Assembly: GCF_020745735.1 (NCBI RefSeq)
Contig: NW_026867509.1
Coordinates: forward strand, 682,001-746,000
Length of the DNA stretch: 64,000 bases
Direction of reading: 5' to 3'
Origin: Hemiscyllium ocellatum
Taxonomy: Eukaryota
Numbering within the stretch: position 1 is the first letter of the stretch; each line of letters begins with the position of its first letter. Of the stretch, positions 5,251 to 49,813 are shown one piece after another. The notes under the pieces are model-generated. The model worked only from the letters and a program-made list of their open reading frames with translations, had not been told where the DNA came from and made no database searches. The position numbers and the translations under genes were made by a program.

Positions 5251-8200
5251 TCAAAACTTACAAAACTTCATTAGGAGACTCAGTGGATATTTCAATCCAT
5301 TCTTTAACTCAGCTCTGAATTTACTCTGTGTCCCTGTATAAATAAATGGGTTGATACAGGAACTCAAAAACTGAAGCAGGTACCCAGTTTCCTGTTGAAT
5401 GAATGCCGACTGACTTAAATTGAAACCTGAGAAATAAGGTACATTCGCAATTCGGACATAGATTGTAGTTATAAAAAATAAAGAATATAACAGGATGAAG
5501 CTGCCCGAGATGGCGAAGAGTAAAACCATGGACTTTTTGCGTTTTTCCATCTCTGGATCCCTCTGATGTTCTCCACTACTCTGAATTCGGAGTCTCCTGC
5601 GGGATCTATTGGCCGCAATAATATGTCTTACAGTTAGAGCGTTCAGAAGTAAAATCAGAATGAATGGAAGACAAGGGGTTAAAATGGTACGAATCCAATC
5701 ATAAGCTGCCCATGCAGGGGACGTATAAAATATTAATTTTATGTTGCAGAACCAGGGTACATTATTAATAATGTAGATAGGTTCATTAATAAAAAACATA
5801 AAGGCACTTTTTATGCAACTGAGTGCAGTCACTATTCCAATAACCAGTGCAGCTGTCCGTTCCGTGCAGTACTTCATTTTCAGTTTCTGACAGGAAATGG
5901 CCACAAATCGATCAAAGGTAAAAGCAACTGTCAACCATGCTGAGCAATCAATTGCTGTGTATATGATGGCATCACGTAGACTGCACACTGGAGTGATGAA
6001 CAAGAAGCTTGATGGGAAGTAAATTCCAGCAACACGGTTTAATATTACAGCAGTTACCACGACCAAGAGATCTGCCCCTGCCATGGACACCAGGTAATAA
6101 ATGATGCAACTAGAAAGGCCACATTTTCTTTGAGAAAGGATCACAATCACTGTCAGGTTAGCTGTCATAGAAACATATATACATGTTTGTAGAAGTAGAG
6201 GAGAAATAGAATCTGATAACAACGGATAACGAGAACTAATCTATGAGATTTTGAATGAAATTGATATTTTTGAGACATGAACTTGAATCAAAAATCACAA
6301 ATTAACATCCTGACAGCTAGTTCTACTTGCAAAGTGATCGGCTTAGAGTGCCCCCATGGCACAATGGCGAGCCCTGATGTTTCACATCACCAGGGACCCA
6401 CGTTTGTTTCCAGCCTCGGTTGATTGCTTCGTGAGATTGTGCGTGTTTCCTCCAAGTGCTCCCTTTTCCACCCAAAGTTCCAAGTTGTACAGGCTAGCTT
6501 TATTGGCTACGCTGGATTATCACATAGTGCTAAGGAAAATTTGGGTTAACTGTGATTATTGTGGGAATACAGAGAGTGGCCAGTGGGTCTTCTGAGAATT
6601 CGAGCACAGTTAATGTTTTGAATGGCCACTCTCTGAACTTTAAGGAGAACATGATTCAAGATTTGAATACAAATAGGTCAATAGAAAAAGATTACAAATT
6701 AATATAATAACACAGATCAGAGAGTAAACTACCTCACAATCATTTTCACTAACCAGAAGTAAAAGACATTAAGATACTATAATGGTCAAATTGGCAAATA
6801 ATGTGGAAAATGTATTCTCGCTGAAAATTTGATAAATAATCCAAGAGAAATCTGAAAACTGAAGAGAAAAAGGATCATATTTTTCTGAACATTAACATTT
6901 GTCGCATCAGACAAAGTACTGTAAAATCATTCGCCATTGGAAAGATCGACAGACAAAAATCAGGAAATGTTCAGAGATTCATAATAAAAATATTGAATTC
7001 TGGGAAACAACGAAAAGTTTTGAAAATTGTTCATCTTGTACTGCTTACTTATCCAAGAAAACTCAACGCATTATTTTATTACTTTATTAAACAATGTTCA
7101 TTTTAAATTGGGAAATACGTGCTTTTTAGTTTTTAACGTCGTTCATCAAAACATGCCATCATTACATTTCTACGTATTTCCATGGAAGGCCTGGAAATCA
7201 ATAAAATATAAAAAAAATTGTATGTTGACTCAGCCAAACTGTTAATAGTTGGAAAACTTCAGTTAAAATGGAAATTGTTTGCATCTACTTGATAGAACAC
7301 TGAATGGCAGACCAGCTATGGTATCCAATCAAACATTGCAGTCAAAACCATGACTAAGATGCCGCCACAACAAAGGAAACCAGCTGATACTGATAACACT
7401 AGAAACATGGAGTGCACTCACCGAAATAATTAATTGATACAGAAAGAAAAAGGATGAGAGAAAGAAAGAGAATTTCAGAGAACGAGAAAGAGAAAGAGAG
7501 GGAGAAGGCCGTTTCATATGTGATTAAGGGGGAAGCATCCGTTACTATTTCAACCCCGAACAAAATCACCCGACCATTTTGGAGCACTCGGTGTTGGAGG
7601 CAATTGTTTAATGCTGGTCCTAAATTAGAACTTACTTCTTACTCCATCAACAATCATTCTGCCAAGAAATTTTCTAATATGTTCATCAGGCCCATGGAAT
7701 GTTAATGCATTCTGGTAGAATTTACCGTAATAAGAAATAAGGAATTTAAAATAAAAAGAAATCAACACAGCAGCATTGAGTAGATGACGAAATGAATGCA
7801 GTGTGATGTTGTGACAACCATTCATTTGGCATATTAAAAATCAAAGTCATACATTTGGAAACGAACAAGGACACAGTTTCTCGCCGACTGATAATCAAAA
7901 GTGATTACTTGCAAAAACTTATTGTAACATGTTTCGGTGTTAAAAAAGATATGGTGGTCAACTTGGTCAATTTATCCTCAAGTTGTGAAAGCGAGTATCA
8001 AAAAACGTGACTCCGAATTTTGAGTGTGACTGTTGAGTCGCAGCAATTCTCATTCTGAGCTTCTTAGTTAATATTCAATTAGCATCTTCTGTATCAGTCT
8101 GAATGAATGGAAATAACTGTTCGGGAGGACTCGATTGCAAAACGAGCCTCCTACAAACGGAACAATCCACATCCCTATCTTGGCGCCCAATAACGTAGCT

Positions 8201-9187
8201 TCAATAAATTAATTCATTATACCGTTAGAATTTAGTCATTTAGTTTGAATCTTCTCTATCAATGAGACACTTTCGTTTATTATTCCACCACTTCAGAAGG
8301 AATGACACAAATGTGTTCATATTTACATGGTGATTGCTTTTTGCCCACAGATATGTTGTCAAATTGGCAACGAGTAACAGCTGCATATGGATAGCAACCT
8401 ACAGGATATTCCTTCAAACTGAACAACATTCAAAACAACATAATGGTTCTACCCTTTTACATAAATAACAGGAAGGTCCTTCACCTTTAATCATAGCATT
8501 AGGAACACAAGGAATCTTCGTATAAACTGTAATAACACTGCGCCAGTGCATCAAAAGACAGTTGCAATGCCATTTGAAAATATATACTTATGCAATAATA
8601 ATAATGCAGTAATTCACCCACAATAGCATTATCAGTGACATCCTGTAATTGTATTTAAATTACGATAAAAGTGTGATAGTTCACACGTAGTGACTCGGCC
8701 CGTTAAAATAACAGAAGTGCATTTATTTTGTCTCATGCTCAAAGAATGTGCGATTTATGACATCGTTCAAACAATCGAATGATAACCGTCACAAGAACAC
8801 AGCATCAAGTTAAAGCAGAGAAAGCACCTTGACAACGTGCATTCCTCACTGTCAGAAAAAAATGCCGCGTTTAACGGAGTGAATTTCTAACATGCATACT
8901 AAAAATAAGCCATACAATTAAATAAGGTAAATGCTCAAATGGCGAACTAACATCGTTATGTTTGCCAATGATGCTGTGAAAACGAAGTTTTGCAATGGAA
9001 TGGAAAGAAAATCATAGAAAATTAAATTGGAACCTATAGAATGCTTCAGGCAAACTTGCAGCATTGATAGAACCAAAGAATGATACTCTCACCTCCAAAC
9101 TAACTCGAATACTTTACCTGGAACACCGAGTGCTCCGAGGATAGGATAATAAATGGCAAACCCCACACCTGCTGGTATTCCGTGCAT
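5251..9187 (-). CDS. Intact two-exon class A orphan GPCR, GPR139-like shark family (326 aa); exon 1 9187-9118, exon 2 6161-5251
   Basis: Exon 1 MHGIPAGVGFAIYYPILGALGVP-g|gtaaag splices in phase 1 to acag|CTAACCTG, giving GVPANLTVIVILSQRKCGLS. Exon 2 has 7TM hallmarks (ADLLVV, AFTFDRFVAI, PCLPF, SSCINPFIY). 70+911 nt = 327 codons ending TGA. Confidence 0.9.
6355..6600 (+). mobile_element. Degenerate HE1-type SINE
   Basis: ggcacaatggc...cagggaccc...gtgctccc..tttccacccaaagttccaag resembles the well-preserved copies at 45077 and 52645. Confidence 0.55.
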
Positions 9188-12100
9188 TGTTACCAGAAGC
9201 TCTGAATGCACTGTGCAATCCCCTGAAATACTCATTGTTATGCATAATAGCAGGCTCTAGGGAGGTCGTTAGTGGGTTTCATGCTTTGAGCTAATTAAAT
9301 TTATTTCAGGAAATAACGTAGTGCAGCTGTTGTTCGAATGAAATTTGTTTTAAAGGATTACAATGTTTTTCCTCCATGGGATTTCACAAGGCTGGAGGTT
9401 TTATTGTCAGAAGTAAAGAAAATAAATATTAATAAAGCTATTTGTGTAACAAAACAGCGTATTATTTATAAGTATGTCCTAAAATCCTATATTTTGGTGA
9501 GTAACATTGTGGTGCTGTCTATTTAAAATATCATTACTCTAGTAACAATTTAACATTTGCTTTCAAATTACGTATTTTACTTATTACAACAAATACAAAC
9601 ATGCTTGAGGCAAGAAACCACGAACAAAGTTCACATTTTATTACAAATATAAAATATTCTCTGCAAAAGAATGGAAAGGAAGGGATTGTTGCTGAGACAG
9701 AGCCGTTTGGTTTTGAGCTATTACCTCCTCAGTTTCATAGCTGCATTTTTAACAATGGCCTTAAAAGTCGAGATCAGATCAAAATTTAAACTTTTCCTAT
9801 ACTCATGTGACATGCATTCACAATGGTCCACGAGAGAGAATTAAAATAGAAATTTCATGCAACATTAAATCTTAATAATAGCATTTTGTGAAACCCACAG
9901 CCAAACTGGATTAGAGCAAAATTGATATGATTCTTTCCGATTGAGTGTGGAATCTTCAAACAAAGGCTGTAAGTGACTGATAGAGAGGCAGAAATAAATT
10001 ATTGAAACATGATCCCACTACTTTATTCCACCATATGATCGTTTCAGTATTCTCTTAACCTTTACATGAGGCATACTGATCTCTCCTCTATGTATTATTT
10101 TTGAATAAAGTTAATTCTTGAAAATTAAATGTTATGTCAGCATTTTGCCATTAGAAACACTGACTATTTTTGCAAAAGAGAACTTAGTTGTACGAGTCAA
10201 ACAAGATCAACAAATGTTCGAATCACAAAGTAAAGTAACGATATTAGCACAAACAACACATTGCTGTAAGTGCTCAGCATAACCTGTGACAGAGATGAAT
10301 GATCCATAAGTACTGCTCCTCCATTGCCCAAACATATTTCAAGAAGAACGGTGAGTTTTCATTCCCCCGTAATTAACTGACTGCCAAAAATGTTGTGCCA
10401 ATACAAAACCAACTTTGCCCAGTTTTGGCAATGTTCTGATGCTATTAGGTGAATGACTGAGGAAGCATAACGTGAAGATTGTCAGAAGGTTCTAAAATAG
10501 CCTTTTGAAGTAGTATCAATATGCTCCATCACTGTTTACACAAGAGTGTGCTTACTTCCCATTTTCAAAGAGTCCACCTATCAATAAAGATTCAGTATGC
10601 ACATCTCTTTAGATCTGTCAGATCCAAATCTTCTGTCTCTGATTGGCAGAATTGGACGTATTGTCCCAAGTTGTCACACGTGACGCAATGTTTTGATTGT
10701 CTGTGAGTATGTGTGAATTTTGCACATCTTGGATCAGATTAATCACCTTCAGAAGAAAGCACACCGGGATACTGAAGTTCAGGCCAGTTTGGTAAATGTC
10801 ACTAGCAGGCGAATGTAAAGAAAATGTGGCATAATTGACACAGAAGAGGAGGAAGCTGAATTGAATTAATCAAAACAATAGACAAGAGGAATGTAGGTAT
10901 GTTAAACAAACGCAGAGCGATCTGGAAGATAGAGCATTGTGCCTAAATATTTGAAATTGTCAGATACGGCAGGAAGAGTAAAAAAGAAGTATGTTATCTA
11001 ATTGCCAAGAGTAACAGAGTACTGAGATACAGGAGGGTGTCACAGACCATGAAGTATGGTAAGTTAGTACTGGCATGCGGTAAATAATTAGCAAGTTTCG
11101 TAGAACATGTTCATTTTTGATCCATGCAATTCATGGAACCACAGTTTCACGAATGTTAATCTGCCAGATGAGGAAAATCAGCAACTTAGTGTCAAATTCA
11201 TGAAACTTCCACACATAACCTGTGCATTTGTGCAATCAAGAAGAGTCCATTGTCCTTCTGTATGTCTCAAGTAAGACTGTCTCCTGCACCTTCTAGGTTG
11301 TTCACCCATAACTGATTGTGTGGAAAATAATTTATTTCATTGTCATGTTGCCCTTTTTTATAACATGTTTCCTTGAATACGAGAATATCATTCTACTGTC
11401 ATGTGAATATTGCACGAGTGCAGTGAAAAAGTTTTGCAATGTCCACCTTCTTATGACGACATGTTAGGAAACAAATATTTCAGTACAATTCTTGACTACA
11501 GCAAAGAAAAAGAAACATTTGCATTATTATAACGAGCTGAAGAATAAGTTTATAAATACAGATAGCCATTACATCAACGCAGCTCAGCATAGCGTTCCAG
11601 TACGTGGGTCTGAACGAACGTTCCAGCTCAGTCCACGAAACAGCAGCAATCCTCGTTCCACATTAATCTTCAGTCCGTTCCATACAGGCATTCAATTGCT
11701 CCAGAGTAAGTCGTGGACTGCTTTCCCCGCACTGGTGTCAATCTATGACTCACTGCCTATGCGATGGCCCATGGTTGCTTTCTGGGATGCTGATGTGGGA
11801 CTGATTCTCTGTGCTGCTCTTTTCACCTGCTCCAGTGCTGACAGCCCACACGCAGCTCCGGGACTCGTGGCCCACTAACTACGTCGGGGCTGGTGCCTCA
11901 CATGCTGCTTCAAGGCTTGTGGCCCACGCACCTTCAAACCTATGGCTTCTGGCTCTCTAACATTTTCGGTGCGGGAACAGTTTCTCCCATTCTATTACAA
12001 ACAGAAACTTCTGCAACCATAGGAAGATTCTGTTTCAGGTATTACATTTGTTATGTTTTTCTGTGTGTCAACATAATTTTCGTTGCATGCACAGTACTGC

Positions 12101-13225: not shown

Positions 13226-13678
13226 ATGTGAGTCCTTGTCCTTACACTGTTTGCCTGTTTAGCCGGAAAGTACAGATCCAACAATCTTACACTGTGCCCA
13301 TTTGGTACAGAGCTTCATGAATCCATGAAAAAAAAACAGACATCGTCTCTGGCTCAGTTCCATTTTGCGGACTAATATCTCCTTTTTTTAATTTCCAGGA
13401 TGTGTCTGTCATTCAGTGGTACAGACTCCACCAGCATGCATCAAGGAAGAGTGTCAGTCTCCCACTATCGACTACATTTTCTATGGTGGTTTCTTTGCAT
13501 ATCCTTTGCAGCAGGGCGAATTCGTCAGATAAACAGACTGGAACAGATCGGGGCCAAATCTTATCTGGAGGATGGTTTGTTTTGATTTCAAATAGAATAG
13601 AAAATGCATTTTCGCCAGACGCTCAGAATGTGAAAAATACTGCCACCTCTTATTTTAAATCCTTGTACAGTTATAGCA
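13226..13678 (+). pseudogene. NAR-TCR V (IgNAR-like) pseudogene, cassette 1; leader 13226-13265, V exon from 13399
   Basis: Leader M*VLVLTLFACLA-G with decayed donor (gaaagt); acceptor tttccag. Exon reads GCVCHSVVQTPPACIKEECQSPTIDY...SSGEF.R..QTGTD..QILSGGWFVLISNRIENAFSPDAQNVKNTATSYF, with stops, frameshifts and both canonical Cys lost. It is homologous to the V at 40.9-41.4 kb (ECQS.TI motif, very short FR2-CDR2). Confidence 0.75.
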
Positions 13679-13717
13679 GTAAGTGATGTGGCTTGGCCTG
13701 GCGCGATTTCAAAACTG
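13679..13717 (+). other. Decayed 23-bp-spacer RSS of NAR V1
   Basis: gtaagtg - 23 nt (atgtggcttggcctggcgcgatt) - tcaaaactg; aligns positionally with the RSS after NAR V2. Confidence 0.45.
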
Positions 13718-14031
13718 CCTCTGCAAATTATCACAGAAGAATGTGAAAATTCGAAACCCATCACCCCTGAGCAGCCCTTATCACCCCCTCTTTCCACCAA
13801 ATCCGCTGTCCTGGTTCTCATAAAACTGGTTTGTCGTTGTTATGGTTTTTAACAATTCTAAATGCTGAGGGGATCTAGTAGTGATGTGTTTTATGGGATA
13901 ATCGTCAGTGAAACGCTGTTGGGAATGACTGATGCCTTTCAGGATTCACGAATACCTGATGGCACCCAATTCTGAAGCTCGCACCTGAAGTCGCTTTTTA
14001 CTCAAAAAGTCCACATCTGACCAATACCGGG

Positions 14032-14103
14032 AGATTTGATGCTGTGCAGAAATATTGTGTTACTGGGTGGAGCCACACAGTGGATGAGACCTAAACAAAC
14101 ATC
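14032..14103 (+). other. D segment (16 nt, 14060-14075, ttactgggtggagcca) flanked by 12-bp-spacer RSSs
   Basis: 5' heptamer tattgtg (14053-14059) with a weak nonamer; 3' CACAGTG (14076-14082) - 12 nt - acaaacatc (14095-14103). Confidence 0.8.
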
Positions 14104-14401
14104 ATACACAATTGCAATAGATATTCTGTTGACCTGTACCCACAAATGCATGCGGAGAAGTTCGCATCCTGGTTTGATTTTACTGTAATTTCATACTTCT
14201 GTTCTCTTTCTTTGACATTATTCTCAATTTCTGCGAAGAGTTCATCTCCAGTTCACGTTCTCTGAGATTTTAGAATTTCCTCAAGAACAACTTGAATTGA
14301 TGCATTGTATCAGACTTGGAATCGAGTGCACTGATTCAACTCTCCTCAATACTGACGCAGAGCCAACTGGTGATTTTCGCCCAGGACATTAAGGTGTCAT
14401 T

Positions 14402-14498
14402 AGTTCTTGCATTTGTGTGACCGAGAACATTGTCATTGTAGTGTACAATGGAACAGTAGATGGATCCAGAACGGAGGTGACTGTCACAGCTGGCAAGT
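14402..14498 (+). other. NAR-TCR J segment (14441-14492) with 23-RSS, cassette 1
   Basis: agttcttgc - 23 nt - cattgta, then VYNGTVDGSRTEVTVTA-g|gcaagt (non-GT donor); the 3' part is near-identical to the J at 42165-42214. Confidence 0.8.
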
Positions 14499-16597: not shown

Positions 16598-17870
16598 TAT
16601 AGAACATAGAACAATACAGCACAGAACAGGCCCTTCGGCCCACGATAGTGTGCCGAAAAGTTGTCCTATGTACCTATCCAATTGCCGCTTAAAGGTCACC
16701 AATGATTCTGACTCTGCCACTCCCACAGGCAGCGCATTCCATGCTCCCACCACTCTCTGTGTAAAGAACCTACTCCTGACATCCCCCTATACCTTCCACC
16801 ATTCGCCTTAAATTTATGTCCCCTTGTAACACTCTGTTGTATACGGGGAAAATGTCTCTGACTGTCTACTTCATCTATTCCCCTGATCATCTTATAAATC
16901 TCTATCAAATCACCCCTCATCCTTCACCGTTCCAATGAGAAAAGGCCTATCACTCTCAACCTATCCTCGTACGACCTATCCTCCATTCCAGCCAAGATCC
17001 TGGTAAATCTCCTCTGCACCCTCGTCAAAGCTTCCACATCTTTCCTAAAATGAGGCGACCAGAACTGCACACAGTACTCCAAATGTGGCCTTCCCAGGAT
17101 CCTATACAGCTTCAACATCACCTCAATATTCTTGAATTCAACCCCTCTGCTAATGAACGCTAATACACCATAGGCCTTCTTACAAGCTCTATCCACCTGA
17201 GTGGTAATTTTAAAAGATCTGTGAACATAGATCCCAAGATCCCTCTGCTCCTCCACCTTACTAAGAACCCTAGCGTTAACCCTGTATTCCGCATTCCTAT
17301 TTGTCCTTCCAAAATGAACAACCTCACAGGGCTGAACTCCATCTGCCACTCCTCAGCACAGCTCTGCATCATTTCTAACTCCATTTGCAGCCGACAAGAG
17401 CCCTCCTCATTATCCACAACTCCACCAATCTTCGTATCGTCTTCAAATTTACTGACACACACTTCGACTCCCTCTTTCAAGTCATTAATAGAAATTACAA
17501 ACAGCAGAGGACCCACAACTGATCCCTTCGGAACTCCACTTGTAACTGGGCTCCAGGCTGAATATTTACCATCTACAACCACTCTCTAACTTCAACCGAT
17601 TAGCCAGTTCTCTATCCAACTGGCCAAACTTCCCACTATCCCATGCCTCCTGACTTTCCGCATAAGCCTACCATGGGGAACCTTGTCAAATGCCTTACTA
17701 AAATCCATGTACACTACATCCACTGCTCTACCCTCATCCACATGCTTGGTCACCTCCACAAAGAATTCAATAAGACTTGTAAGGCAAGACCTACCCCTCA
17801 CAAGTCCGTTCTGGCTGTTACGGGTCTTGCAGTTACAACACGAAAAGTCATCTGAATGCATATCTAAATT
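16598..17870 (-). mobile_element. 5'-truncated CR1 LINE with frameshifts and (CATAGAA) tail, nested in the older CR1
   Basis: ORF pieces SCLTSLIEFF, VDVVYMDFSKAFDKVPH, VTSGVPKGSVVGPLLF, RPHLEYCVQFWSP, MRGDLIEIYKMIRG; tail atagaacatagaacaatacagcac. Confidence 0.95.
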
Positions 17871-20379
17871 GGAAGGATTGGGAGGTATATGGTCCAAATG
17901 GTGGCAAATGAAGCTACATTAATTTAGAATATCTGATTGTCATGGACGGGTTGGACTGAAGATTCCGAATTTTACATCCCTGATTCGATTATATTGAAAT
18001 TCAACTGCTCAGTGAAGGGTCACACTTACAAATTGAATTACTCTGGATTGCATTATGTTAACTGTATCTTATTACAACTCGGATTGACCTAATTAAACGT
18101 ATCTATCCCTTAATGGAGCCCATAAGTAATCCGTTTGTTAGACGTTTGAATACGAAAGGCTCAATGCATTTGGAAATAATGCAAATGATGATGTGAAGAC
18201 AGGTGAACCACCTTGATATACATGAAATTTACCGCCCTACTCAGGGCGGAATCTCCAGTTCAGATTAATATACGTTTACATGATCAACTTTGATTTTTTT
18301 TTAACACCGCTGAGTATAGGGTTGAGCAGCTATACACATTATTTTCAGCGTTAGAACAGCCTGGGCCTTATCTCTAAAGTCAGTGAGGATGAGAAGATTC
18401 CATAGAAATCTTTGATCTGGAGTGAATGAATTGCCTGTGGAGACATTTGTTCCACTGTCTGTCGCTCCAGAACAAAACGCTGCACAGTACAGCTGTATGA
18501 AGTTCCAAAACAGCAGATGGATACATTGGGAGGAATGCATGCATACAGAGACAGATTTTGAGCATCCGCAATTCCTTGCTTTATTGTTTTGGTGCAAGTT
18601 ATAATAGAAAACACAGCAAATAATTCTTCTGATGATATCAAAGTAACATTCTGAAAATAAAAAATTGGGAAAATCCATGTTTACTTTTGTTTGCACATTT
18701 CAACGAATCGAAACACTGCACAACTTAAACCATTTATGTTTGCAAATGAAGCCACAGCACACTTTATTCCGATACCTGAGACACACAGCTGAAAATGGTT
18801 CCACTATACAGGATACATTCCAAGCATTTTGTTGATCAAGTCTTTTCCCGCTGTAGTCAGTTGCAACAGTATGAAGAACATTGGGAAAATGAGCTTGAAC
18901 AATCATAGGATCACTCTATTTGGCCTATTGAGGCTACACCAAACCTCCAAAGAGCATCCCAACCGTACCCACTGCCTTCCCATCGAATGCTGTATTTCCA
19001 ATGGCTAATTGTAATCACCTAGCCGAAGCATAGCCATAGAGCAAAGTGTATGCTTAAACAGTTCATGTTAGTCTGAGATTCCTACATTATCAGAGACTTA
19101 ACTGGATATTATTTGTCTCTATTTTGATTGGGAACATTGATTGCAGCCAACCAGGAGACTGGCATAAGAATATGAGCTTGTATGCAGCGGGCTGTTAAGA
19201 TCAGTAATGCACAATCAAGTTGCTGGTAGATAGGAATTGTGTTTTTTTTTAATCTCGAATGTAATCGGATAAATCTGTACAGATAAAGAAGATAGTAATT
19301 TGAGCAAGTAGAAACATAGGGTAATAAAAAAAGCAACACGAATACGTCATTCAGCACCTCGAGCCAGTTCTTCTTTTCAATGTAATTCTGGTTGATCAGG
19401 GAGGTCAATACAATAATCCTACCCTCTTCCCATATCCCTTGATCCCTTTGGATATAAAAGCGAAATTCGATCGAGCATTCGTGAGGGAGAGAGGTAATGA
19501 AAATGTCTATGTGAGAGAAAGATAGGGAGCTTGTGTATAAGAGACGTAGATAATAAGATTGAGCATGCAAGAGAGAGAAGGCAAGATATGAAGAACCGAA
19601 TTGTCCCCGAACACTTCATTCCCAATATCTTGTTGCTTATGCAGCTGTCAATAGTGGGAAATGTTCCAATTCCTCTGGTCAGTTTTTGTCTTTAAATCTC
19701 AACACATTTCAATCTGAGCCATAGAAATTGAAGAATATTAATAACTGACTTCGCTGATTATGAGGCTTGTGAATTTTATCATGCCAGCTGATGTCCCTGT
19801 TAAAGACGGGCACAACTGGCAAATTAAGAACTAATATGCGGCGTGATCGCTAGTGCAATCGATAATGCGCTTCCTGCTGCATCTGGCGATTGCATGCTTG
19901 ATCCTCACGTGCCTCCAGTGCATTTCTTAGACTCAGTGTTCATCACTTGTCAAAGTAGACGATTTTTGTTGTACTACTTAAAAAATTCACTGGAAAATAG
20001 CTGATGAGAAAAGTTGCTGGTAGGATTCGAACATGTGCAAGGATAACATTGTTGTTGCATTTATATTGTGGTGACAATCACCAGATGAATGCTGATAATG
20101 TTGGTCCAAAGATCGTAATGTGATTTCACCATCGAAAAAAGCGAATTGACCTGGACTGGCTCCGCTATGATCCCAGAGTTTCCCTGTAATTCTGCTCCTT
20201 CTCGTTAATCAGACCTTCGAGGAAATAATAGACTGAGATTGATAGATGAAGAGAAGGATCGGGTTTTGTGGATCCCTATGTAAACCATCCTCGGGATCAA
20301 CACGTTTTAGATCGTTAATATATGAATAAGAAACAACGTTTTGTCGTATTTTCTTATGCAGTGCATGAGGACGTCGCTG

Positions 20380-20690
20380 GTAAGGCAGCGTTTACTTACC
20401 ACTCCTAAAAGTGGGCAGTTAAGGCTCAACCATATTGCTGTGAGTCTGGAGGCAAAAATAGGACAGACAAAGAAAGGATGGCAGTTTCCTTCCCTAAAAG
20501 ACATCAGTGAACCTGATGGGTTTTTCCGACAATCGACAATAGGTTCATAATCATTATGAGATAGACTTTTTAAAATTAAATTCAGATTCTACCATCTATC
20601 AGAGCAGGATTCGTAGCTGTGCGCCCAGAAATTAACCTGGCTCTCTGGATTAACAGGCCATCAGTAATACCAGGAGGTCATCTCCTCCTC
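20380..20690 (-). mobile_element. Shark tRNA-type SINE copy
   Basis: Same family as 4057-4290 (gggcagttaaggctcaaccatattgctgtgagtctggag...aggatggcagtttccttccctaaaagacatcagtgaacc). Confidence 0.6.
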
Positions 20691-34900: not shown

Positions 34901-36129
34901 TATTCTAATTCGTTTTGCCTAAATTATTCCAGGACTGCATCTGCAGAATGCACTCATCATTGATGGTTTCTTGAAAGAACATGATAAACACCCAGTGCTG
35001 ATCTCAAACGTCGAACATGACATTCATGGTCCTGCACTGATAGTGAACAGCCTGAAGTTGTGACACCGCATGTCTCAATGACAAGCCCTAACGAACGGTT
35101 GACGTCTTTGCTGCTGGAGTGCAATGGTCAACAGAGTGCATGCGCACTAATCCTGAATGCGGAAAAGAAAGCTGTGAGTAGCTCTTCAAAATTCACAGGG
35201 ATGGAGTTGGTAAAATCGTTTAGCAGGGGATTTATCCACGGGCAATTTAAACCAAGAGGAAAAGTGAAGTAAGGCTGGAATTGCGAAGTAACGCATGTCT
35301 GGCAGCATCTTTGGAGGCAAATCAGCGTTTCGTTTCCAATAATGCATAAGAGTGGTTGAACTTGAAATGTTAATTGTAATTTACTCTACTAAGGTACTGC
35401 TGGACCTGTTAAGCTACTCGTTCGTTTCAGATCTCCAGTCTTTGCATTGTTGTACATTTATTCGAGAGAATATTCACTCCTGCACGTCCATTCTGATCTG
35501 GTGTTGAAGGCTTTAATTACGTTTTATTTCTGCAGTGCATTTGAAACAGATACTTGGTAGCTGTGAAACTGAGCTCATCTGTCTCATCAAAATCTGACGT
35601 AGTCATTAAAGTCATCAAGATCTGAACATCATGTATTTTGAAGTTGGAACACCAACGTTTGTTCCTTCCGCCTACAGGCAAAGAATGCAGCAAAGAATCA
35701 GAGTCATTAGGAGATAAACAAACTTCAATGGGTACAAATGTATCGGAGCCAGATAAATTGCAATCAAAATCACGGGTGAACATTGAACTGCTTTCAAGCA
35801 GAAGTATTTCCGACACGATTAAGGTTTATTCCCATCAACGGTGCAGACAGTGGTCGCAAAACCAATGCCATTTTGAAGACAACATGCAAAAGCAAAATTA
35901 AGATTCTCAGGGGAAAAGCACTTGTGACAAATATGAGGTTGATAGTTCAATGACAACCGGGAATAAGTGAATAAATAAATGTCAGACCAGACATTGAAAA
36001 GATGACCGAGGCTCAGATAGATTTGAAGCAAATCTCTTCAATAATCATTTCACCAATAAATGTGCAATTAAAAGAACACGTATTGAGTGTAAAGAAGACT
36101 TCAAAAGATCATCCAGACTCGAGAGATTC

Positions 36130-36670
36130 AATTTCACCTACGCAATGGATTGTGGGAAAGAGTTCAGATACCCATATGAGTTAAAAATTCATCGACACAG
36201 TTACACTAATTAGAAGCCATTGATTTGTTCGAAGTATGGAAAGGAATTCATCGGGCCATCACGTATGCTCTTACATCACTGCATTCACACTAATAGAAAA
36301 GAGACCTTTTAAATGTCCAAACTGCCAGAAATTCGAAAGTCACTCTGGTAAACGTATTCTTCATCAACGTGTTCATAACGATGATAGATTGTTCTTCTCA
36401 TCTCACGATAGTAGTAGGTTCAAGAGATCGCCGCAACTCACTGTACATCCGCGAATTCAGGTCCCGCGACGCCATTCTCCCGCCATGAGTGGGAAAATAT
36501 TTACCACATCATCCTTACATCTAACTCAACAACGATTCGTCTTCTAAGTACAACGCACTCCTCTTTTGAGTGGGGGAAGTGATTTACTAATTTATCTGAG
36601 CTGCTGATACACACCGGCGTCTTCACACAGAACGACGCTGTTCATCAGCGCTGAATATGGGGAAACAAAG
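36130..36670 (+). pseudogene. C2H2 zinc-finger array relic
   Basis: DCGKEFRYPYELKIHRHSYTN*KPLICSKYGKEF; KRPFKCPNCQKF..ILHQRVH; GK*FTNLSELLIH, with stops and frameshifts. Confidence 0.75.
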
Positions 36671-40670: not shown

Positions 40671-41417
40671 ACGCGGGTACACTTCTTCGTTTGATCCTCT
40701 GTGTCTGTTTACCTTGTGAGTATCGATCGCAGAAACCAACTTTGCGTGAAATCAAAACTTCACTGCTGTCGATTTCGCCCGCATTCCAGCAGAGTCTGCA
40801 ATTTTAACCATGTTGTGTGTATCAGTTCTAAAGTCCACTCACTTCCCTCTGTTTAAATTCCAGGTTATTTCAGTCAGTCCGTGACACAGAGCCTAGTAGT
40901 GGTGAATAGGAAGGAGTGCCAGTCTCTCACCATCAACTGTGTTTTTAAAAATCATAATTCTTGTCATTACTTTGAGAGTGAACAATTCTTTCGTCAAACG
41001 CAGGCAGCGCAGGGAATGCGAGCGGACAACAAGCGATGGAAGATGTGTTGTGTTCAGTCATTCCAGCAGAATCTGCAATTTTAACCATGTTGTGTTAATG
41101 TCCTAATGTCCGCTCACTTCTCTCTGTTTAAATTTCAGTCAGTCCGTGACACAGAGCCTAGTAGTGGTCAACAGGAAGGAGTGCCAGTCTCTCACCATCA
41201 ACTGTGTTTTGAAAGTCATAATTCTTATCACTATTTTGAGAGTGAATAATTCTTTAGTCAAACGCAGGCAGCGACGGAATGGAAGCGGATCACAAGCGGT
41301 GGGAGATGTGTTGTGCCCCTGAATAAAGCAAAAAATACATTTTCGTTGTAAATTTGGGATATCAGAGCTGAAGACACCTCCACCGATTACTGTAATGCTC
41401 GATACTGGTCCGGTATA
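40671..41417 (+). pseudogene. NAR-TCR V (IgNAR-like) pseudogene, cassette 2, with an internal 277-bp tandem duplication
   Basis: Decayed leader ending ..LILCVCLP-t|gtgagt (40715); acceptor at ~40863. Composite reading: CYFSQSVTQSLVVVNRKECQSLTINCVFKNHNSCHYFESEQFFRQTQAATEWKRITSGGRCVVPLNKAKNTFSL*IWDIRAEDTSTDYCNARYWSGI. The short C-to-C distance and ISxGGRxVxxxNK motif are IgNAR-like; F replaces the FR2 Trp. Confidence 0.88.
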
Positions 41418-41456
41418 TACATTGATGGGCCTCGGCTTCCCGTCGCTCCAAGACTC
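41418..41456 (+). other. Decayed 23-bp RSS of NAR V2
   Basis: tacattg - 23 nt - ccaagactc. Confidence 0.5.
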
Positions 41457-41746
41457 TGACGGGAGACTATTATAGAAAGAAATTGAAAACGGAGGCAATC
41501 TATCCAGAAATTCCCACATTGCTGCCTCGCAGCTTCTGTCCCAACGTCTGAGTCATTTTAAAAAAACATTCTGTGTTTCACAGATGCCAAGTGTGTTCGA
41601 ATGGTGATCCCGCTGTCAAGACTTGTGTGGATGAATGGAACTGATCACAGTTAAAGGATACTGACGTGGGTGGATATCCTGTTCTAACAACTGGAATTGG
41701 GAATTTCAGTTCAGCTGTAATGTCCCAAATCTCAACTAGTCTTGGG

Positions 41747-41818
41747 AAGTTTTACACAGATTTATGGCACTGTGCCAATTTGGAAGAAAGCACAGTGAAA
41801 GGAGCCCGAACAAATAAC
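41747..41818 (+). other. D segment (16 nt, 41775-41790, ccaatttggaagaaag) flanked by 12-bp RSSs
   Basis: Perfect CACTGTG (41768-41774) and CACAGTG (41791-41797); 3' spacer 12 nt then acaaataac; 5' nonamer weak. Confidence 0.85.
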
Positions 41819-42125
41819 TCTGCACAATTAAAATATAAATTCGCCAGCACCAATATCGATTGTTAGCTTGAAGTTCACTTCGCTGTAATGTCGGCTGATA
41901 CCTTAACACTCCCTTGCAAGCACATATTTCTTTTTTCGATTCTTCTCATCTGATATGATGTGAACATCCACCTTCTGTATTCCAGTGCCATTTGACAGAA
42001 GATCAGGTGACCTGAGACAAAGGAAACTTGACCACAGAGAATATTGCCTATCTATCCAAATCTCATGAAACAATAGTTTGGTCAAGCATCGTGTTAATGA
42101 TTTTTCGATCGTTTGAGGTACAACT

Positions 42126-42220
42126 GGTCCTTGTATATTGGAGGCTGAGAGGAGCATGATTGTGTCATTATGATTAAGTAGATGGATCAGGAATGGCCGT
42201 GACTGTCACAGCTGGTAAGT
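42126..42220 (+). pseudogene. NAR-TCR J segment (42165-42214) with 23-RSS, cassette 2
   Basis: ggtccttgt - 23 nt - gattgtg, then HYD*VDGSGMAVTVTA-g|gtaagt; contains an in-frame TAA. Confidence 0.85.
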
Positions 42221-42929
42221 GACTCTGCATTCCATCTTGCTCTGATTTATGTTGCTGAACGATCGATTTATTGTTATTATCAAAGTAACTAAAGCAAATA
42301 CTTTAGAAGGAACGGATTCTGTTACAGTGTCCAAGTTGAGAGCAGAATATTCGAGTCAGGTCCTGATTTCCACAAGCAAAAGAATGAATGACACCTGGCC
42401 CTAGGTCGGTGGTTTCACTGCACCTCGGGCATCTCTGGTCTAACAGGTCAATAGAGGGTGACCATCAATATGGCGAGCAGGTGCTTAAATGAATGATGAG
42501 TACCGACCGTCTGGACTCCATTCCCGGAGTTATCTGTGATCGATGTTGCTCCTTCTGTTGCTTAGATCACAAGAGAAGGCTCACTGAGCTTTGTACCAGG
42601 CAGAACGTCAATCCCAAATTCGAAAAGTTCAACAAAAAACATTGTCCCACCAGAAAATCAGAAGATTATTCAACGAATTTCAGATACAAGAGACCTGGGT
42701 GTAAGTCAAGATGAAGACGTATATTTGAAGAATCGTTGTCAGGAATGATCGACTTGCTATTTATTTTCAGTTCATTTCATATGTGCATTCATCTAACCAA
42801 TCAAGTTCCCATTTTTCCAGCCTCAGGAATGCATGTGAAACTAGAAAGAATGTTTGCTTATTTAATTTGGTCTTTTGAGACATCGGTTTGCTGTAAACCA
42901 AATCTTAAACAAGGAATAAAGCGGGATAA

Positions 42930-44765
42930 AAGGGTTATGAAATAGCTTTAGCAAGCAGAATTAATGAGAATGCCAAAGTGCTTTGTTCTTATATAAGAAG
43001 CAAGCGAGTAACTAGGGAAAGGATTGGTCCACTAAAGGATAATGAAGTAAGGCTGTGTGCCGAACCTGAGAGAATGGCTGAGATTCTGAATGGTTACTTT
43101 GCATCAGTGTTCACTGAGGAGAGGAACATGATGCGTCTTGAGATTAGAGATAATTTTTTTATTAGTCTGGATCACGTTGACATAAGCAGGGAAGATGTGT
43201 TGGGTCAGCGAGAGGTTATCAAAGTAGACAAATCCCTAGCACTGGATGGGATCTATCGCAGGTTGCTGAGGGAGGCGAGAGAGGAAATAGCTGGGGACCT
43301 GACATATATCTTTGTGGCATCCTGAAATACAAGTGAGGTACTGGAGGACTGGAAGGTTGATCATGCTGTCCCCTTGTACAAGAAGGGTAGTTGGGATATT
43401 CTGGTTAACTACAGACCAATGAGCCTGACGTTGGTGGTGGGAAAGTTGCTGCAGAGGATAGTGAAGGATAGGATCTATTTATATTTAGAAAAGAATGGGC
43501 TAATCAGTGACAGGCAACGGGGTTTTGTGCGGGGAGATCGTGCATTACCAAATTAATAGAGTTCTTCGAGGAAGTGAACAAGTTGATGGATGAACGAACG
43601 GCTGTTCATGTCATATACATGGACTTTATTAAGGCGTTTGATAGGGTACGCCATGGTAAACTAATAGAGAAAGTGAAGTCACATGGTGTGCATGTGCTCT
43701 CGCTAGTTGGATAAAGAACTGGTTGAGCAAAAGGAGACAGAGAGTAGTCGTTGAAGGGAGTTTCTCGAAATGTAGAAAGCTGACCAATGGAGTTCCACAG
43801 GGGTCAGTGTTGAGGTCACTGTTGTTTGTGATGTACATAAATGATCTGGAAGAGGGCACTGTTGGCATGATCAACAAACTTGCAGATGACACGACGATTT
43901 CAGAAGTAGCAGAAAGCATAATGGACTGTCAGAGAATACAGGGGGATACAGATAGGCTGGAGAGTTGGGCGGAAAGGTGGCAGATGGTGTTCAATGCAAA
44001 TAAATGTGAGGCGATGAATTTAGGCAAGACTAATTCTCGAGCGAATTCTACAATGAATGGAAGAGCCTTGGGAAAAGTTGATGAGCAGAGAGATCTGGGA
44101 GTGCAGGTCCATTGTACCCTGAAGGTTGCTGCACATGTGGGTAGGGTGGTCAAGAAGGCATATAGTATTTTTGCCTTCATTGGACGGGATATTGAGTATA
44201 AGAGCTGGCAAGTCATGTTAAAATTGTATAAGATATTGGTTCGGCCGCATTTACAATACTGTGTACAATTCTGGTCTACACATTAGAAAAGAATGTGGAC
44301 GCTTTGGCGAGGTTGCAGAGATGGTTTACGAGGATGTTGCCTGGTATGCAAAGTGCTAGCAATGAAGAGAGGTTAGGTTTATTTTCATTAGAAAAAAAAA
44401 AGATTGAGGGGGGACCTGATAGAGGATTACAAAATCATGAAGGGTATAGACAGGGTGGATAGAGACAAGCGTTTTCCCAGGCTGAAGGATTCAATAACGA
44501 GAGGTCACGCGTTCAAGGTGAGAGGTGGAAAGTTTAAGGGGGTTACACGCGGCAAGTACTTCACATAAAGGGTGGTGGGTTTCTGGTACGCGTTGCCAGC
44601 AGAAGTAGTAGAGGCAGGCACGGCATATTCATTTAAGATGCGACTGGACAGATGCGTGAGTAGGTGGGGAGCAAAGGGATACAGATTTTCAGGAATTGAC
44701 CTTCAGGTTTGGGCAGTACATTTTGAGAGGCTGAGGCTTGAAGGGCGGAAAGACCTGTTTCTAAG
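42930..44765 (+). mobile_element. Decayed CR1 LINE (~1.8 kb of ORF2) inserted between NAR J2 and its supporting V
   Basis: GPLKDNEVRLC..MAEILNGYFASVFT; NYRPMSLT; NGVPQGSVL..LFVMYINDL; ADDT; RPHLQYCVQFWS. Confidence 0.93.
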
Positions 44766-45076
44766 CTGTAAATTTTCTTTGTTCTTGGATTATTTGTCTT
44801 CATAGACTGTCTCCTCAACTGACAGCGCAGCAGTTGTCTCACGAGCTCTGCCTGCCAGTTTGGTCTGAAAAAGCATTACCCATAAAAGCTGGGACCACTC
44901 CATCTGCCTAGCCAATTATTCCAATGGAATAAAGAACGCGTCAACATCATTCTCATCAAAGGGTTTTGATATGCTGATAACACATTAAAACATCACTGTT
45001 GAATCAGTTTCCAAGACATGTTTTGGCACATCATAAGAAGAAAATATGTAAAACAAAACGTCACCTCATCACCTCG

Positions 45077-45378
45077 TTAGATTAGATTTAGATTAGACTT
45101 ACAGTGTGGAAACAGGCCCTTCGGCCCAACAAGTCCACACCGACCCGCCGAAGCGCAACCCACCCATACCCCTACATTTACCCCTTACCTAACTCTACGG
45201 GCAATTTAGCATGGCCAATTCAACTGACCCGCACATCTTTGGACTGTGGGAGGAAACCGGAGCACCTGGAGGAAACCCACGCTGACACGGGGAGAACGTG
45301 CAAACTCCACACAGTCAGTGGCCTGAGTCGGGAATTGAACCCAGGTCTCTGGCGCTGTGAGGCAGCAGTGCTAACCAC
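45077..45378 (-). mobile_element. HE1-type shark SINE, young copy
   Basis: Minus strand gtggttagcactgctgcctcacagcgccagagacctgggttcaattcccg...; CR1-like tail gggccgaagggcctgtttccacactgtaagtctaatctaa; high identity to the 52645 copy. Confidence 0.9.
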
Positions 45379-45457
45379 AAGAGAGAACATATCAAAGTAT
45401 AGCATCAAGAAAATAAACAGAAACATTCCTGTGTTTTGCATTTTCTCCTTTCAACAG

Positions 45458-45805
45458 AGGATGAATAAGTGATGATGCTGAATGTCATCCTAAATATTCC
45501 TGTTCCCTGGTTTCTCGGGGTCGATCCCTACAAATATCTCCTGCCGGTGACACGGTTACTTTAAGCTGTGATTATTCAGGGATCTGCCCGTATGCAGTTT
45601 ACTGGTACTGTCAGTCCCTAGGACACTCTCCCAAATACACGATTCAAAGACAGACGTCAGGAGAGCAGAATAAAGAAAATGGTGAAGGCATACGAATTTC
45701 TGCATCCATTGATCCTGCAGTGAAAATCGGTTGGTCAATGATCTCACAAAAACAAGCAAATGACTCCTCTATGTATTATTATATACAGAGTCAGCACTCA
45801 GCACA
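45458..45805 (+). pseudogene. Leaderless 'supporting' TCR-delta V of NAR-TCR, pseudogene
   Basis: Acceptor tttcaacag in phase with J2 and no leader exon. Reads ED E*VMMLNVILNIPVPW.. then (frameshift) AGDTVTLSCDYSGICPYAVYWYCQSLGHSPKYTIQRQTSGEQNKENGEGIRISASIDPAVKI...NDSSMYYY. It has an extra CDR1 Cys; the second canonical Cys is lost. Confidence 0.88.
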
Positions 45806-45844
45806 GACAGTTGTATGCAGTACGGAGAGAGCTGCACAAAAACC
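45806..45844 (+). other. 23-bp RSS of the supporting V
   Basis: gacagtt - 23 nt - ACAAAAACC (perfect nonamer). Confidence 0.8.
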
Positions 45845-47642
45845 TGAACACGCTGGGAATTACACATGGAGTTCACAGATCACTGAGAGAGCTCTCAGAT
45901 AACCGATAAATTCGATGTCATTCAGTAAAATGGAGCCAAGTGGATGAGCACTGCCTCCACAAAACATCTCTCCCTGTGTCATACATGCTCAGTAACGGAA
46001 TCTACACAATGCACTGCAGAAACATAGAACTTTGGAACATGAGTGAGCTTCGTGGACACTGTGAATAGATTTTGAATATGACCGAATAATCTTAAATTAT
46101 TTGAATTATAGATGCGACTCCATCTTTATTCGTGAGTTACCAGACCTCATTATTATCTTGCTGATGCCTGTCAACTTAAATGCCATTCTGGCTATGACTC
46201 CATTATTACTTCCCCAGGTACTAAATATTACCTTACTCGCTCTATCTCATTCATCATTGTTTTTTTTTAATTGAAACTAATGTTTATGCCAGTGTCACAC
46301 GCTTATCGGATTCACACATTCAAAATGTTCTCTCTGGCATATTTTGGTTCTAAGTACGCTCTGATATGCTCACTGTTTCAACAGACTCTGGTTGTAATGT
46401 ATCTAGAACGTGCCTCCTTGATGAACATACTGAGAACACAATTATTAAATGCACGAGATCCTACCATTGGTTGTGCAATTGCAATGTTTAAGGAATCAGT
46501 TTCTGTCTCTAATTATTTTATAATTTCTGTCATTCCACAGTTATTTTACAAACAGTTCATTTATTTATTTCCATGAGACTAGATGGTGAATGAACTAATA
46601 GTATGTGTTAATGTTTATGCTTAGTTTCACTGCTTAATTTCTATCATTTTTGCTCACATTATGTCGCAACTGGTCTCTGTTTGTAATAAGCTACACCACA
46701 TCTCTGTTTCTATTAAACCAGGCCCTATTTTAGTTGTTCTTTCTCTGCAGCGTGTTGATGGCACCATATATTCACATACTATTTATTGGTTTCGATCGTG
46801 TGTGAAATCGTTTGGAACCTGGATAAAATGATACGCCATTCTTTTAATATTACAAGACCTCTGTCCCTCTGAAAACTGTAAATGGTTTAATCTCATTTGC
46901 TCATGCACAACGATACGACGCTTCCTGCAATAAATTAACCATGCCTGTGTAGTCGATGAACTTGGCACTATACTTTGAAGCAAACTTCCAATCACTCCTT
47001 AACCTGATGTTTCTCTCGTTACATTAAGTATTGAAAATGGTCAACTGTTTTTGCAGCAGAAACGCTCGACAGAACCTTCAGCATTTGAACGCCTTCTTGC
47101 ATTTGTGATTCATCGGACCAAATGAAGAATTTTTCAGATTCAACGTTACTTAAATTTGCATTTGATGGTCGGCACAATGTTGAGGTGGTTTGTTTGTTGA
47201 ATGTGATTTTCCAAACCTTCAACTGTAAATTTATGGAAACGTTGAAAAAATGTTAAAATATTAGGCACTAAAACACATATAAGTGAAGCCAACGATGAAG
47301 TAAATTGACGCTTAAAATGAAGAAAAATCTGGGAAATGGCAGAAATGGGAAGAAGAAAGAGGCTCAACTAAGTATTTACCAGCAGCGGAATCAGTACTGA
47401 AAGACTCAACAACATATTTTGTGCATTGTGAGCCTGTCCCCGAAGGGAAATACAGTTATTCGCCTTGTTGGAAGGCATGAGCAGTGACGTAATCTCTTTG
47501 TTCAAAGAAATGTAAGTAAGCTGTGTGCTGTACCTTAATTGTCCCTCTTGCGACTATCACTCTGAATAAATGAGGGGCCATTTGAATATGTCGCAGAGCA
47601 ACCCTCCACAGCGACAACAACTCCTGCAGTTTCTGAACGAAG

Positions 47643-49813
47643 ATGCATGAGGCAGTCATTGCCCCCTTCTTTGTAATTTGCTATTCAATTCTCGCTGCTG
47701 TTGGTGGCCCTGGTAAGTCACTGATTCTCGAAAAAATCGATTACCTTATCATGTATTTCCAGTTTATTTCCTTTCCTTCCAGGATTTGGTAGAATCTTTC
47801 CAATATGCAACTGTTAATTTTAAGGACCTTCAGTGGGTCTCTAATCTATATAATAAATTAGGAAATAACATCTGTGCTCTGAAAAATAATCGTAAATTAC
47901 TTCCAATTTCATTATAACGAAGGGAATTGTGCTCTTCAATTTTGCATGCTGTGCAGTTATAGAAAAAAGTAACTATGAGACGCTGAACTGAAATTTGTGG
48001 TGAATGACAATGCATGAACGTTAATGTGTAATATTGTCACAGACTAAGGTCCAGCCCAATTCGGTGAAATGCAATTTAGTTGATTGTAGGATGAATTGTT
48101 TATCACCGTGTCAGAATTTATACTATGTGCTCTGGAATGATGTAATCGGGTATTGAGTTCCCAATGGACGATAACATTGTTTTGTTCAAATGAACGTCAT
48201 AAGAAAAGAGCAGAAACCGAGCTGCTCAGGAGAATGTTCCATCAATTTGGGGACGGTGGGGTGGGGTTTACTCAATACACCTATAATCAACACAATTCGC
48301 GATATTAATTTGAGGAAGGAACAGAAGATAAAATAAGTTAACATGAGATTTCAGACAGATGTATGATGTTACGGGAATGACCAGATGCTGGTGCTTCAGA
48401 AAAATTGAAGCATGTGATTGTGAAGGGTGAGACACCACTGGTGAGCAGCCGAAGTCGGTCAATATTTATGGATTAAAGGTTGGCTATGCTTGCTATGAAT
48501 AATTTCATGACAACCACATTATGCTGTTTATCCCGAATTGAACAATAGCTCCTGGCCTTAACTCAGTGACAGGAGAGCGATGTTTATTCCTGAGCTGATC
48601 ACACTGACAGTTGATGTGGAGATGCGGTGTTGGGTTGGAGTGGAGAAAGACAAAACTGACATGACCCCAGGTTATAGCCCAATGGGTTTACTTGAAATAA
48701 CAAGAATTTGAAGTGCTATTCCTTCGTCAGGTGCATTGACAGATATTTGATGCTGCATGTGTTGAACAACACTTGACAGTTATTTCAAAACAGGCAGAGA
48801 CTCGGGTTGGCAGGTTTATGTTCAAAGACTGTTTCATAAAAAAAAATGCATATGTCAACAGCCGGTGCTTTGACTAATTCATTACTGTCACTCTCTTTTG
48901 ATTTATCACAGCCAACTTGCTGGCGATCATAATTCTATCTCATGGAAGATGCGGTCTCTCCCGATGCATCACCTACTACCTGGTGGCAATTGCGGTGAGT
49001 GACTTCCTTGTCATCACCAACGCAGTTATCCTCAATCGAATCAGCCGCTTCTATTTTCGGCAAAGTGTCTTGTCCACCACTCCTGTGTGCACTCTCAGTG
49101 TCATATTGGTCTATGCTACACTCGACTGTTCGGTCTGGCTGACAGTCGCCTTTACCATCGACCGTTTTGTGGCCATCTGCTATCAGAGACTGAAGACAAG
49201 ATACTGCACCAAGAAAACTGCATCGCTCGTTATTGGAATGATCTGTGTCCTGAGTTGCATCAAGAACGCTCCTTTCTACCTTGCATTCCAGCCCTTGTTC
49301 ATTTTGGACGGGATACCCTGGTTTTGTAACGTCAAAGCAAACTTCTATACCTGGCCAGTCTGGCAGTTTCATGATTGGTTGTTTCGGGTCTTGAACCCTT
49401 TTCTCCCGTTCTCCCTCATTCTGTTGCTCAACGTCCTGACCATAAGACACATCCTAGCGGCCAACAGGGCCCGCAGGAGGCTCTGTGGTGCTGCTAAGGG
49501 ACAAGATCCAGAGATGGCTAATCGCCAGAGGTCCATTGCCTTACTTTTTGCCATCTCTTTAAGCTTCCTACTCATGTGGTCTCCTCTTCTCGTACATTTT
49601 ATATATGTGCGGATTAAAGATGAGAGTTACTTTAGTGGGCTGGATTTCAGTGATCCGTTGTATACCTTTGAAGAGACGACCAACACACTCCAGATACTTA
49701 GTTCTTGCAACAACGTCTTCATCTATATGGTCTCTCAGAACTTGTTTCGAAAGCAGATGAAGAAAATTCTAATATACCCCTTTGTCACCCTCGCCAGGTC
49801 CTTTAAACGATGA
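47643..49813 (+). CDS. Intact two-exon class A orphan GPCR, GPR139-like shark family (323 aa); exon 1 47643-47712, exon 2 48912-49813
   Basis: Exon 1 MHEAVIAPFFVICYSILAAVGGP-g|gtaagt (70 nt, same size and phase as the paralog) joins cacag|CCAACTTG, giving GPANLLAIIILSHGRCGLS. Motifs SDFLV, AFTIDRFVAI, PFLPF, SSCNNVFIY; 972 nt ending TGA. Confidence 0.9.

Follow-up and report, generated by a model that had tools for sequence, protein, structure and literature searches.

Intact class-A GPCR genes as probable functional passengers in a shark TCR alpha/delta V array

Introduction

The window analysed here is a stretch of 64,000 nt from the epaulette shark Hemiscyllium ocellatum (contig NW_026867509.1 of assembly GCF_020745735.1, positions 682,001 to 746,000 of the forward strand). 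In it, two genes for G protein-coupled receptors (GPCRs), hereafter genes A and B, lie among alpha/delta-type T-cell receptor (TCR) variable (V) segments and NAR-TCR cassettes. The question raised by this locus is why genes that do not rearrange should stand intact in an array of antigen-receptor segments. In the reading that we consider probable, both are functional passengers of the V array, with promoters of their own that hint at neuronal or chemosensory use. Genes A and B would be ordinary, non-rearranging members of an orphan class-A GPCR family that is very large and specific to cartilaginous fish, and the GPCRs and the V segments would be two birth-and-death multigene families that have long been co-resident in one chromosomal region. 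The GPCRs would have a separate function for which selection maintains them, while the surrounding V and NAR segments turn over and mostly decay.

Structure of the two GPCR genes

The coding exons of genes A and B are as follows.

9118..9187, minus strand: gene A exon 1, 70 nt, phase 1, from the ATG to CCAG/gtaaag (slash, splice site); N-terminus and start of the first transmembrane segment (TM1)
5251..6161, minus strand: gene A exon 2, an open reading frame (ORF) with the remainder of the seven-transmembrane (7TM) domain and the stop codon; AG acceptor at 6163-6162
47643..47712, plus strand: gene B exon 1, 70 nt, phase 1, donor /gtaagt
48912..49813, plus strand: gene B exon 2, including the stop codon

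An initial annotation of the window had proposed two intact GPCR genes at these positions, each with a 70-nt phase-1 first exon and a complete 7TM frame without lesions, and all of this is borne out. The spliced frames are open over 326 codons in gene A and 323 codons in gene B, and the 70-nt phase-1 exon 1 was recovered in five external models (L001, L006, L003, L004 and L005). The external loci comprise L001 and L006 from the epaulette shark, L002, L003 (NC_063373.1, about 2.49 Mb) and L004 from the whale shark, L005 from the zebra shark and L007 (BEZZ01003299.1) from Chiloscyllium punctatum; the exon structures of the five models were obtained by fitting NCBI protein models to the genomic DNA. 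Exon 1 of gene A has homologous 70-nt exons in the whale shark and zebra shark models. Over the first 24 residues of P0121, the C. punctatum ortholog of gene B, exon 1 of gene B shows two differences; gene B as a whole is 93% identical to P0121. The NCBI model of the A-type gene at the whale shark locus L002 uses a non-homologous first exon of 58 nt (L002 10001-10058). The canonical 70-nt exon 1 and promoter were not found within 10.9 kb upstream at this locus, and the 58-nt exon would be either a mis-annotation or an exon replacement.

The Pfam profile 7tm_1 is matched along its whole length by both genes, with 1.2e-24 for gene A (profile positions 2-260 of 260) and 1.8e-21 for gene B (positions 5-260). 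Across 209 family members, 92 columns are conserved to 90% or more; genes A and B each keep 89 of these, a figure equal to the family median. Both carry the DRF motif, and in both the cysteine pair of TM3 and the second extracellular loop (ECL2) is found in PVC and WFCN, as read from the alignment. The TM7 motif is NPFIY in gene A and NVFIY in gene B, the latter a variant common to the whole B clade. Genes A and B are thus rhodopsin-class (class A) GPCRs by the end-to-end 7tm_1 match, DRF, the TM7 motif and the cysteine pair. A tblastn search of the 64-kb window revealed no GPCR copies beyond these two. For annotation, the locus illustrates that, inside antigen-receptor arrays, intact genes that begin with a short exon are being overlooked.

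Relationship to known receptor families

The two homology searches returned 1828 and 660 significant proteins, of which the named ones are nearly all from sharks and rays and bear the automatic name “probable GPR139”. Identities of 65-93% link genes A and B to at least 120 proteins listed per search. Among the matches listed, the best shark homolog of gene A is 76% identical to it, and no annotated protein is identical to gene A or gene B.

The shark genes resemble GPR139 and GPR142 in the class-A fold, in N(I/L)L..IILS at the start of the aligned region and in the TIDR(Y/F) motif. However, human GPR139 reaches only 32 bits (E = 8e-7), and GPR15, adrenergic, neuromedin-U and galanin receptors score as high as GPR139 or higher against genes A and B. 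Adrenergic and neuromedin receptors outscore GPR139 for gene A, whose top match among solved structures is an adrenergic receptor. For gene B the top solved structure is GPR15, a weak match of 36 bits against 32 bits for GPR139, and this similarity to GPR15 is no greater than any class-A receptor would show. There is one conserved gene for true GPR139, whereas the shark family numbers hundreds of genes or more and is restricted to cartilaginous fish. True orthology of genes A and B with GPR139 or GPR142 was rejected on these grounds (32 bits, with other receptors equal or better). Membership in the odorant receptors (ORs) was also rejected, since neither gene matched the odorant receptor profile, Pfam 7tm_4, at E up to 0.01. 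The designation “GPR139-like” of the initial annotation stands as a database label and as a statement of the class-A fold, but GPR139 is not the closest receptor. Genes A and B are accordingly treated here as a putative separate chondrichthyan class-A family, to which the name “GPR139” has been attached loosely and automatically.

The two receptors share 52% identity with each other and fall on opposite sides of the midpoint root in a tree of 211 sequences. Gene A groups there with whale shark and zebra shark genes, and gene B is sister to P0121 inside a hemiscylliid-specific clade. Among the matches listed, both genes are closer to relatives from other shark orders (66-76%) than to each other, and the split between the A and B subfamilies predates the divergence of the shark orders.

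Selection on genes A and B

Purifying selection, which had been proposed for these genes with a dN/dS comparison (nonsynonymous over synonymous divergence) as the check, is well supported for gene B and reasonably supported for gene A. For gene B, dN/dS was 0.21-0.29 against an epaulette shark paralog and 0.17-0.22 against a whale shark relative; for gene A it was 0.15-0.17 against a whale shark relative. The comparison of A with B is uninformative because dS is saturated.

A neutral yardstick is provided by an 18-kb orthologous intergenic block (window 18554-36336, L007 1-18489), which is 88-89% identical between the epaulette shark and C. punctatum (p = 0.094, K = 0.100) and has 4.7 gap openings per kb. 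This identity, taken with SINE copies 95% identical to those in epaulette shark loci, is what a hemiscylliid genome other than Chiloscyllium would show. Over the same divergence, gene B and P0121 differ in 24 of 323 residues and by no indel, with dN of ~0.033 and an omega of ~0.33, a value that sets amino-acid differences against intergenic divergence and does not come from a codon model. In neutral simulations over the full divergence, gene B would keep an open frame with a probability of ~0.026 and escape indels with a probability of ~0.010, jointly ~3e-4. Gene A, simulated over half the divergence, would stay intact with a probability of ~0.01.

The orthologous block ends abruptly at window position 18554, and past the break L007 contains a decayed GPCR fragment (L007 20827-21358) that is not present in the window. 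The break points to a rearrangement or indel that sets the two species apart, on the side of gene A.

V segments and NAR-TCR cassettes

The antigen-receptor elements around the two genes, some with a recombination signal sequence (RSS), are as follows.

about 13226..14498, plus strand: NAR-TCR cassette 1, decayed, found by three-frame reading and RSS scan
24186-24578, minus strand: open V exon of the TCR alpha/delta type, with a good 23-spacer RSS at 24205-24243
40671..45844, plus strand: NAR-TCR cassette 2, with broken V domains; recognisable structure but dead
56158-56409, minus strand: broken V relic, found by tblastn
62338-62822, plus strand: complete V segment with leader 62338-62398 (61 nt), V exon from 62481 and RSS 62785-62822

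As the initial annotation had it, most of these neighbours are broken: both cassettes and the V relic at 56 kb are decayed, the latter being a fragment without a Pfam match. Only the V segment at 62 kb, whose RSS consists of the heptamer CACACTG, a 22-nt spacer and the nonamer ACAAAAACC, looks fully functional in the window. The V exon at 24 kb has an ortholog at the orthologous place in C. punctatum, and its leader is doubtful: the sole leader-like exon (24997-25053) is in the wrong phase and is interrupted by an in-frame TAG, and a repeat lies in between. For the two good V domains, at 24 kb and 62 kb, TCR alpha chains are the best match among solved structures, and their TCR-alpha identity is taken from these matches because the V-segment homology search returned only C. 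punctatum proteins without names.

Cassette 1 holds a NAR V relic near 13400-13650 in which neither cysteine is left and stops and a frameshift are present. The cassette still has a 12-RSS at 14076, whose offset matches that of the 12-RSS at 41791 in cassette 2, and these two are the only canonical CAC[A/T]GTG-nonamer RSSs found in the window. The NAR V of cassette 2 (41146-41396) has two in-frame stops and a frameshift, and is preceded in tandem by an 86%-identical partial copy (40881-41084). The underlying tandem duplication of ~270 nt, likewise 86% identical (40782-41052 / 41059-41315), spans the last part of the leader intron together with the NAR V exon's first half, so cassette 2 has one truncated and one frameshifted NAR V. 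A reverse-transcriptase insert of the long interspersed nuclear element (LINE) type (42978-44800) separates the NAR V-D-J part from the supporting V (45537-45791), which is without the second cysteine (Cys104) and has a 27-nt RSS spacer.

Age of the V-GPCR linkage

Collinearity between the whale shark locus L003 and the epaulette shark locus L006 runs for ~8.5 kb upstream of a B-type GPCR, takes in a V segment and continues through the GPCR itself. A V segment occurs within 10 kb at all four B-clade loci examined, and none was found within 10 kb at three external A-clade loci. Among the matches listed, about three quarters of the whale shark matches of both searches are on the 11.7-Mb chromosome of L003. 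From the L003/L006 collinearity and the locus survey, the family is present in V arrays as well as away from them, and its interleaving with V segments is conserved, not recent. The linkage of V segments and GPCRs predates the divergence of whale and epaulette sharks.

Locus L003 also contains an annotated product of 313 residues with two V-set domains (L003 18026-22541), 5.5 kb downstream of the B-type GPCR. Either a double V like that of a NAR-TCR or a gene model that fuses adjacent V segments could account for this product.

Comparison with known passenger genes

Gene B is a passenger by definition, as it does not rearrange, is without an RSS of its own and has V segments on both sides: one flank holds cassette 2 and the 24-kb V, and the opposite flank the V segments at 56 kb and 62 kb. 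In the window, gene A has V and NAR segments on one side. The precedents invoked for such genes are sound. Human OR10G2 and OR4E2, like mouse Olfr1507-1509, are situated amid TRAV genes, with synteny conserved to sheep (PMC4574546), and trypsinogen clusters are found inside TRB from frog to human (PMC12529555).

Like genes A and B, the mammalian ORs of TRA/TRD are non-rearranging class-A GPCRs with their own promoters between V segments; their position is conserved across species, and they are subject to loss when an upstream V rearranges (PMC4574546). The shark genes differ in belonging to another GPCR family (no 7tm_4 match) and in having two coding exons. Moreover, the mammalian ORs occur only at the 5′ edge of the locus, whereas the shark GPCRs are scattered through the array and adjoin NAR-TCR cassettes. 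The trypsinogen (PRSS) genes of TRB are likewise unrelated, long-conserved passengers between V and J segments, but they encode enzymes, lie in a different locus and have undergone no large lineage-specific expansion. Set against the mammalian case, the shark locus thus presents the same kind of arrangement, but the GPCR family is another one, the interleaving goes much deeper and NAR-TCR cassettes are among the neighbours. No paper on this GPCR family or on its pairing with TCR V segments was found, in agreement with the earlier impression that the pairing had not been characterised.

The V segments in the window face both ways (the 62-kb V on the plus strand, the 24-kb V on the minus strand), so some V rearrangements would delete the DNA of genes A and B and others would invert it, whichever side the J-C end is on. 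Loss or inversion in rearranging T cells, and with it a gene dosage that would differ between clones, is a sound expectation from the V(D)J mechanism. It would matter only if genes A and B act in T cells; for passengers with a function elsewhere, excision or inversion in V-to-(D)J joining would be a harmless by-product.

Promoters

The promoter features of the two genes are as follows.

9253..9298, minus strand: gene A promoter region, with TTAATTAG at -111 and the O/E-like TCCCTAGAGCC at -76, from the alignment with whale shark and zebra shark promoters
47536..47553, plus strand: gene B promoter composite at -107, in which TAATTG (homeodomain site) runs straight into TCCCTC.. (O/E-like site)

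In a three-species promoter alignment of the B clade, the longest invariant block is TTAATTG followed by (T/G)CCC(T/C)C. This composite stands at -107/-108 from the ATG and is also present in L001, L003 and L006. The A-clade genes of the whale shark and zebra shark have TAATTA abutting TCC(T/C)..GAG at about -85. A homeodomain site beside an O/E-like site, 84-108 nt before the ATG, is found in six of eight promoters; O/E (EBF)-like sites are present in all promoters, and a CAGCTG E-box is kept in the A-clade promoters. This E-box, CAGCTGCA in gene A (9320-9327, minus strand), is kept in all three A-clade promoters, those of L004 and L005 included; it stands ~140 nt before the ATG, upstream of the homeodomain and O/E-like sites.

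The composite was defined as TAATT(A/G), 0-3 nt and YCCY, and was searched for on both strands of 226 kb containing eight 200-nt promoter windows. It had 16 matches, 6 of them inside the promoter windows against 0.057 expected. Because the copies within each clade are homologous, this enrichment should be counted as two lineages plus conservation.

Lhx2 and Ebf sites placed side by side are the signature of olfactory-receptor enhancers (PMC5608512). The promoters and enhancers of odorant receptors share with the shark genes a TAATT(A/G) core beside an O/E-like pyrimidine-then-purine site near the gene start, and likewise serve singly promoted GPCR genes of a large clustered family. In the shark motif, the second O/E half-site is degenerate, the sites are predicted ones, and their location is the proximal promoter, unlike the strict odorant-receptor composite, which is enriched in distant enhancers (PMC5608512). 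The resemblance of the promoter composite, with its putative sites, to olfactory-receptor regulation is offered as a lead only. Judged from this motif resemblance only, a compact promoter with homeodomain and O/E (EBF)-like sites could direct neuronal or chemosensory expression, not expression in T cells.

Alternative explanations

The initial annotation had suggested that the GPCRs spread by co-duplication with NAR-TCR cassettes, GPCR and cassette forming one unit. The 5′ end of each gene is indeed 1.8-4.0 kb from a cassette: gene A stands head-to-head with the NAR relic of cassette 1 at 4.0 kb, and gene B in tandem behind cassette 2 at 1.8 kb. By simple geometric arithmetic, however, the chance that each of two genes in 64 kb lies no more than 4.1 kb from one or other of two cassettes is ~0.06-0.13, and the two orientations differ. 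Self-BLAST of the window confines the similarity of A and B to 505 nt at 65% identity in the coding exons and reveals no homology between their flanks or between the two cassettes. The 52% protein identity and the age of the subfamilies, greater than that of the shark orders, also tell against a shared unit, as do B-clade paralogs, which have in common ~0.8 kb upstream, both exons and part of the intron, but no V. A co-duplication unit is thus largely refuted for this window and highly improbable as an account of these genes; the cassette pairing seen here appears to be coincidental. This correction, that the pairing with NAR cassettes would not be a duplication module, is the main result for the window.

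Improbable too, if somewhat less so, is a lymphocyte function, in which the GPCRs would be expressed in thymocytes, T cells or B cells via open chromatin or EBF/E-box sites and V(D)J deletion would shift their dosage between clones. The conserved location inside the V array in whale and epaulette sharks would fit this, as would the O/E (EBF)-like sites of all promoters, the E-box of the A-clade promoters and the weak GPR15 match of gene B. Family members nevertheless occur away from V segments, as at the three A-clade loci; a homeodomain site abutting an O/E site is an olfactory, not a lymphoid, signature; and the GPR15 similarity is of a generic class-A kind, the top match of gene A being an adrenergic receptor. 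The least probable account of all is that genes A and B were recently silenced or never expressed and that their open frames are accidental. It could draw on the mutated homeodomain core of gene A, at a conserved position, and on the lack of an identical annotated protein among the matches listed, but it is opposed by conserved residues at the family median, by dN/dS well below 1 and by the simulations, in which a neutral frame stays open and indel-free in only ~1% of cases for gene A (half divergence) and 0.03% for gene B (full divergence).

Several observations nonetheless count against functional passengers with neuronal or chemosensory promoters. The promoter motif is short, and its B-clade copies are homologous, not independent. 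EBF and E-box sites are also active in lymphocytes. Gene A has TAACGA where the TAATTA homeodomain core of its relatives aligns. It has no close C. punctatum ortholog among the matches listed in the homology search, because of which recent constraint on gene A is read from its intactness alone. Finally, the J-C end of the locus lies outside the window.

Implications

Functional passengers in the V array would be of interest beyond this locus. In the sensory genome of a catshark, only the four canonical olfactory families were treated, and these were stressed as being very small. Sharks have a very small canonical olfactory-receptor repertoire (PMC11979771), yet they possess a huge and apparently undescribed class-A GPCR family. 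If the promoter resemblance holds, this family would be a candidate new chemosensory repertoire, and the locus a natural case in which V(D)J deletion removes functional non-immune genes. A bolder proposal, speculative and unlikely to be right in full, is that the family is a missing large chemoreceptor repertoire with an Lhx2/Ebf-type promoter code, like that of odorant receptors; its long-conserved interleaving with TCR alpha/delta V segments would then make the OR-TRA/TRD neighbourhood of mammals the trace of two stochastically chosen receptor families that have shared one chromatin domain, either since ancient times or repeatedly. What the window itself adds is two clean intact examples, an estimate of constraint against a neutral yardstick, a V-GPCR block shared by whale and epaulette sharks and a cross-species test of the promoter motif.

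Other features of the window

A G-rich stretch at 58001-60000 has a GC content of 0.52 and a GC skew of +0.46, with glycine/arginine-rich long ORFs at 59541-60062; a tandem-repeat search of this stretch was empty. Further reverse-transcriptase fragments of the LINE type (Pfam RVT_1) are located at 1096-1912 and 16599-17377, and related copies are present in every shark locus examined. A repeat of ~290 nt resembling a short interspersed nuclear element (SINE) occurs at 45088-45378 and 52645-52928, with 93% identity between the copies. The repeat is 94-95% identical to copies in the epaulette shark locus L006 and 72-84% identical to those in L001 and in the whale shark and zebra shark.

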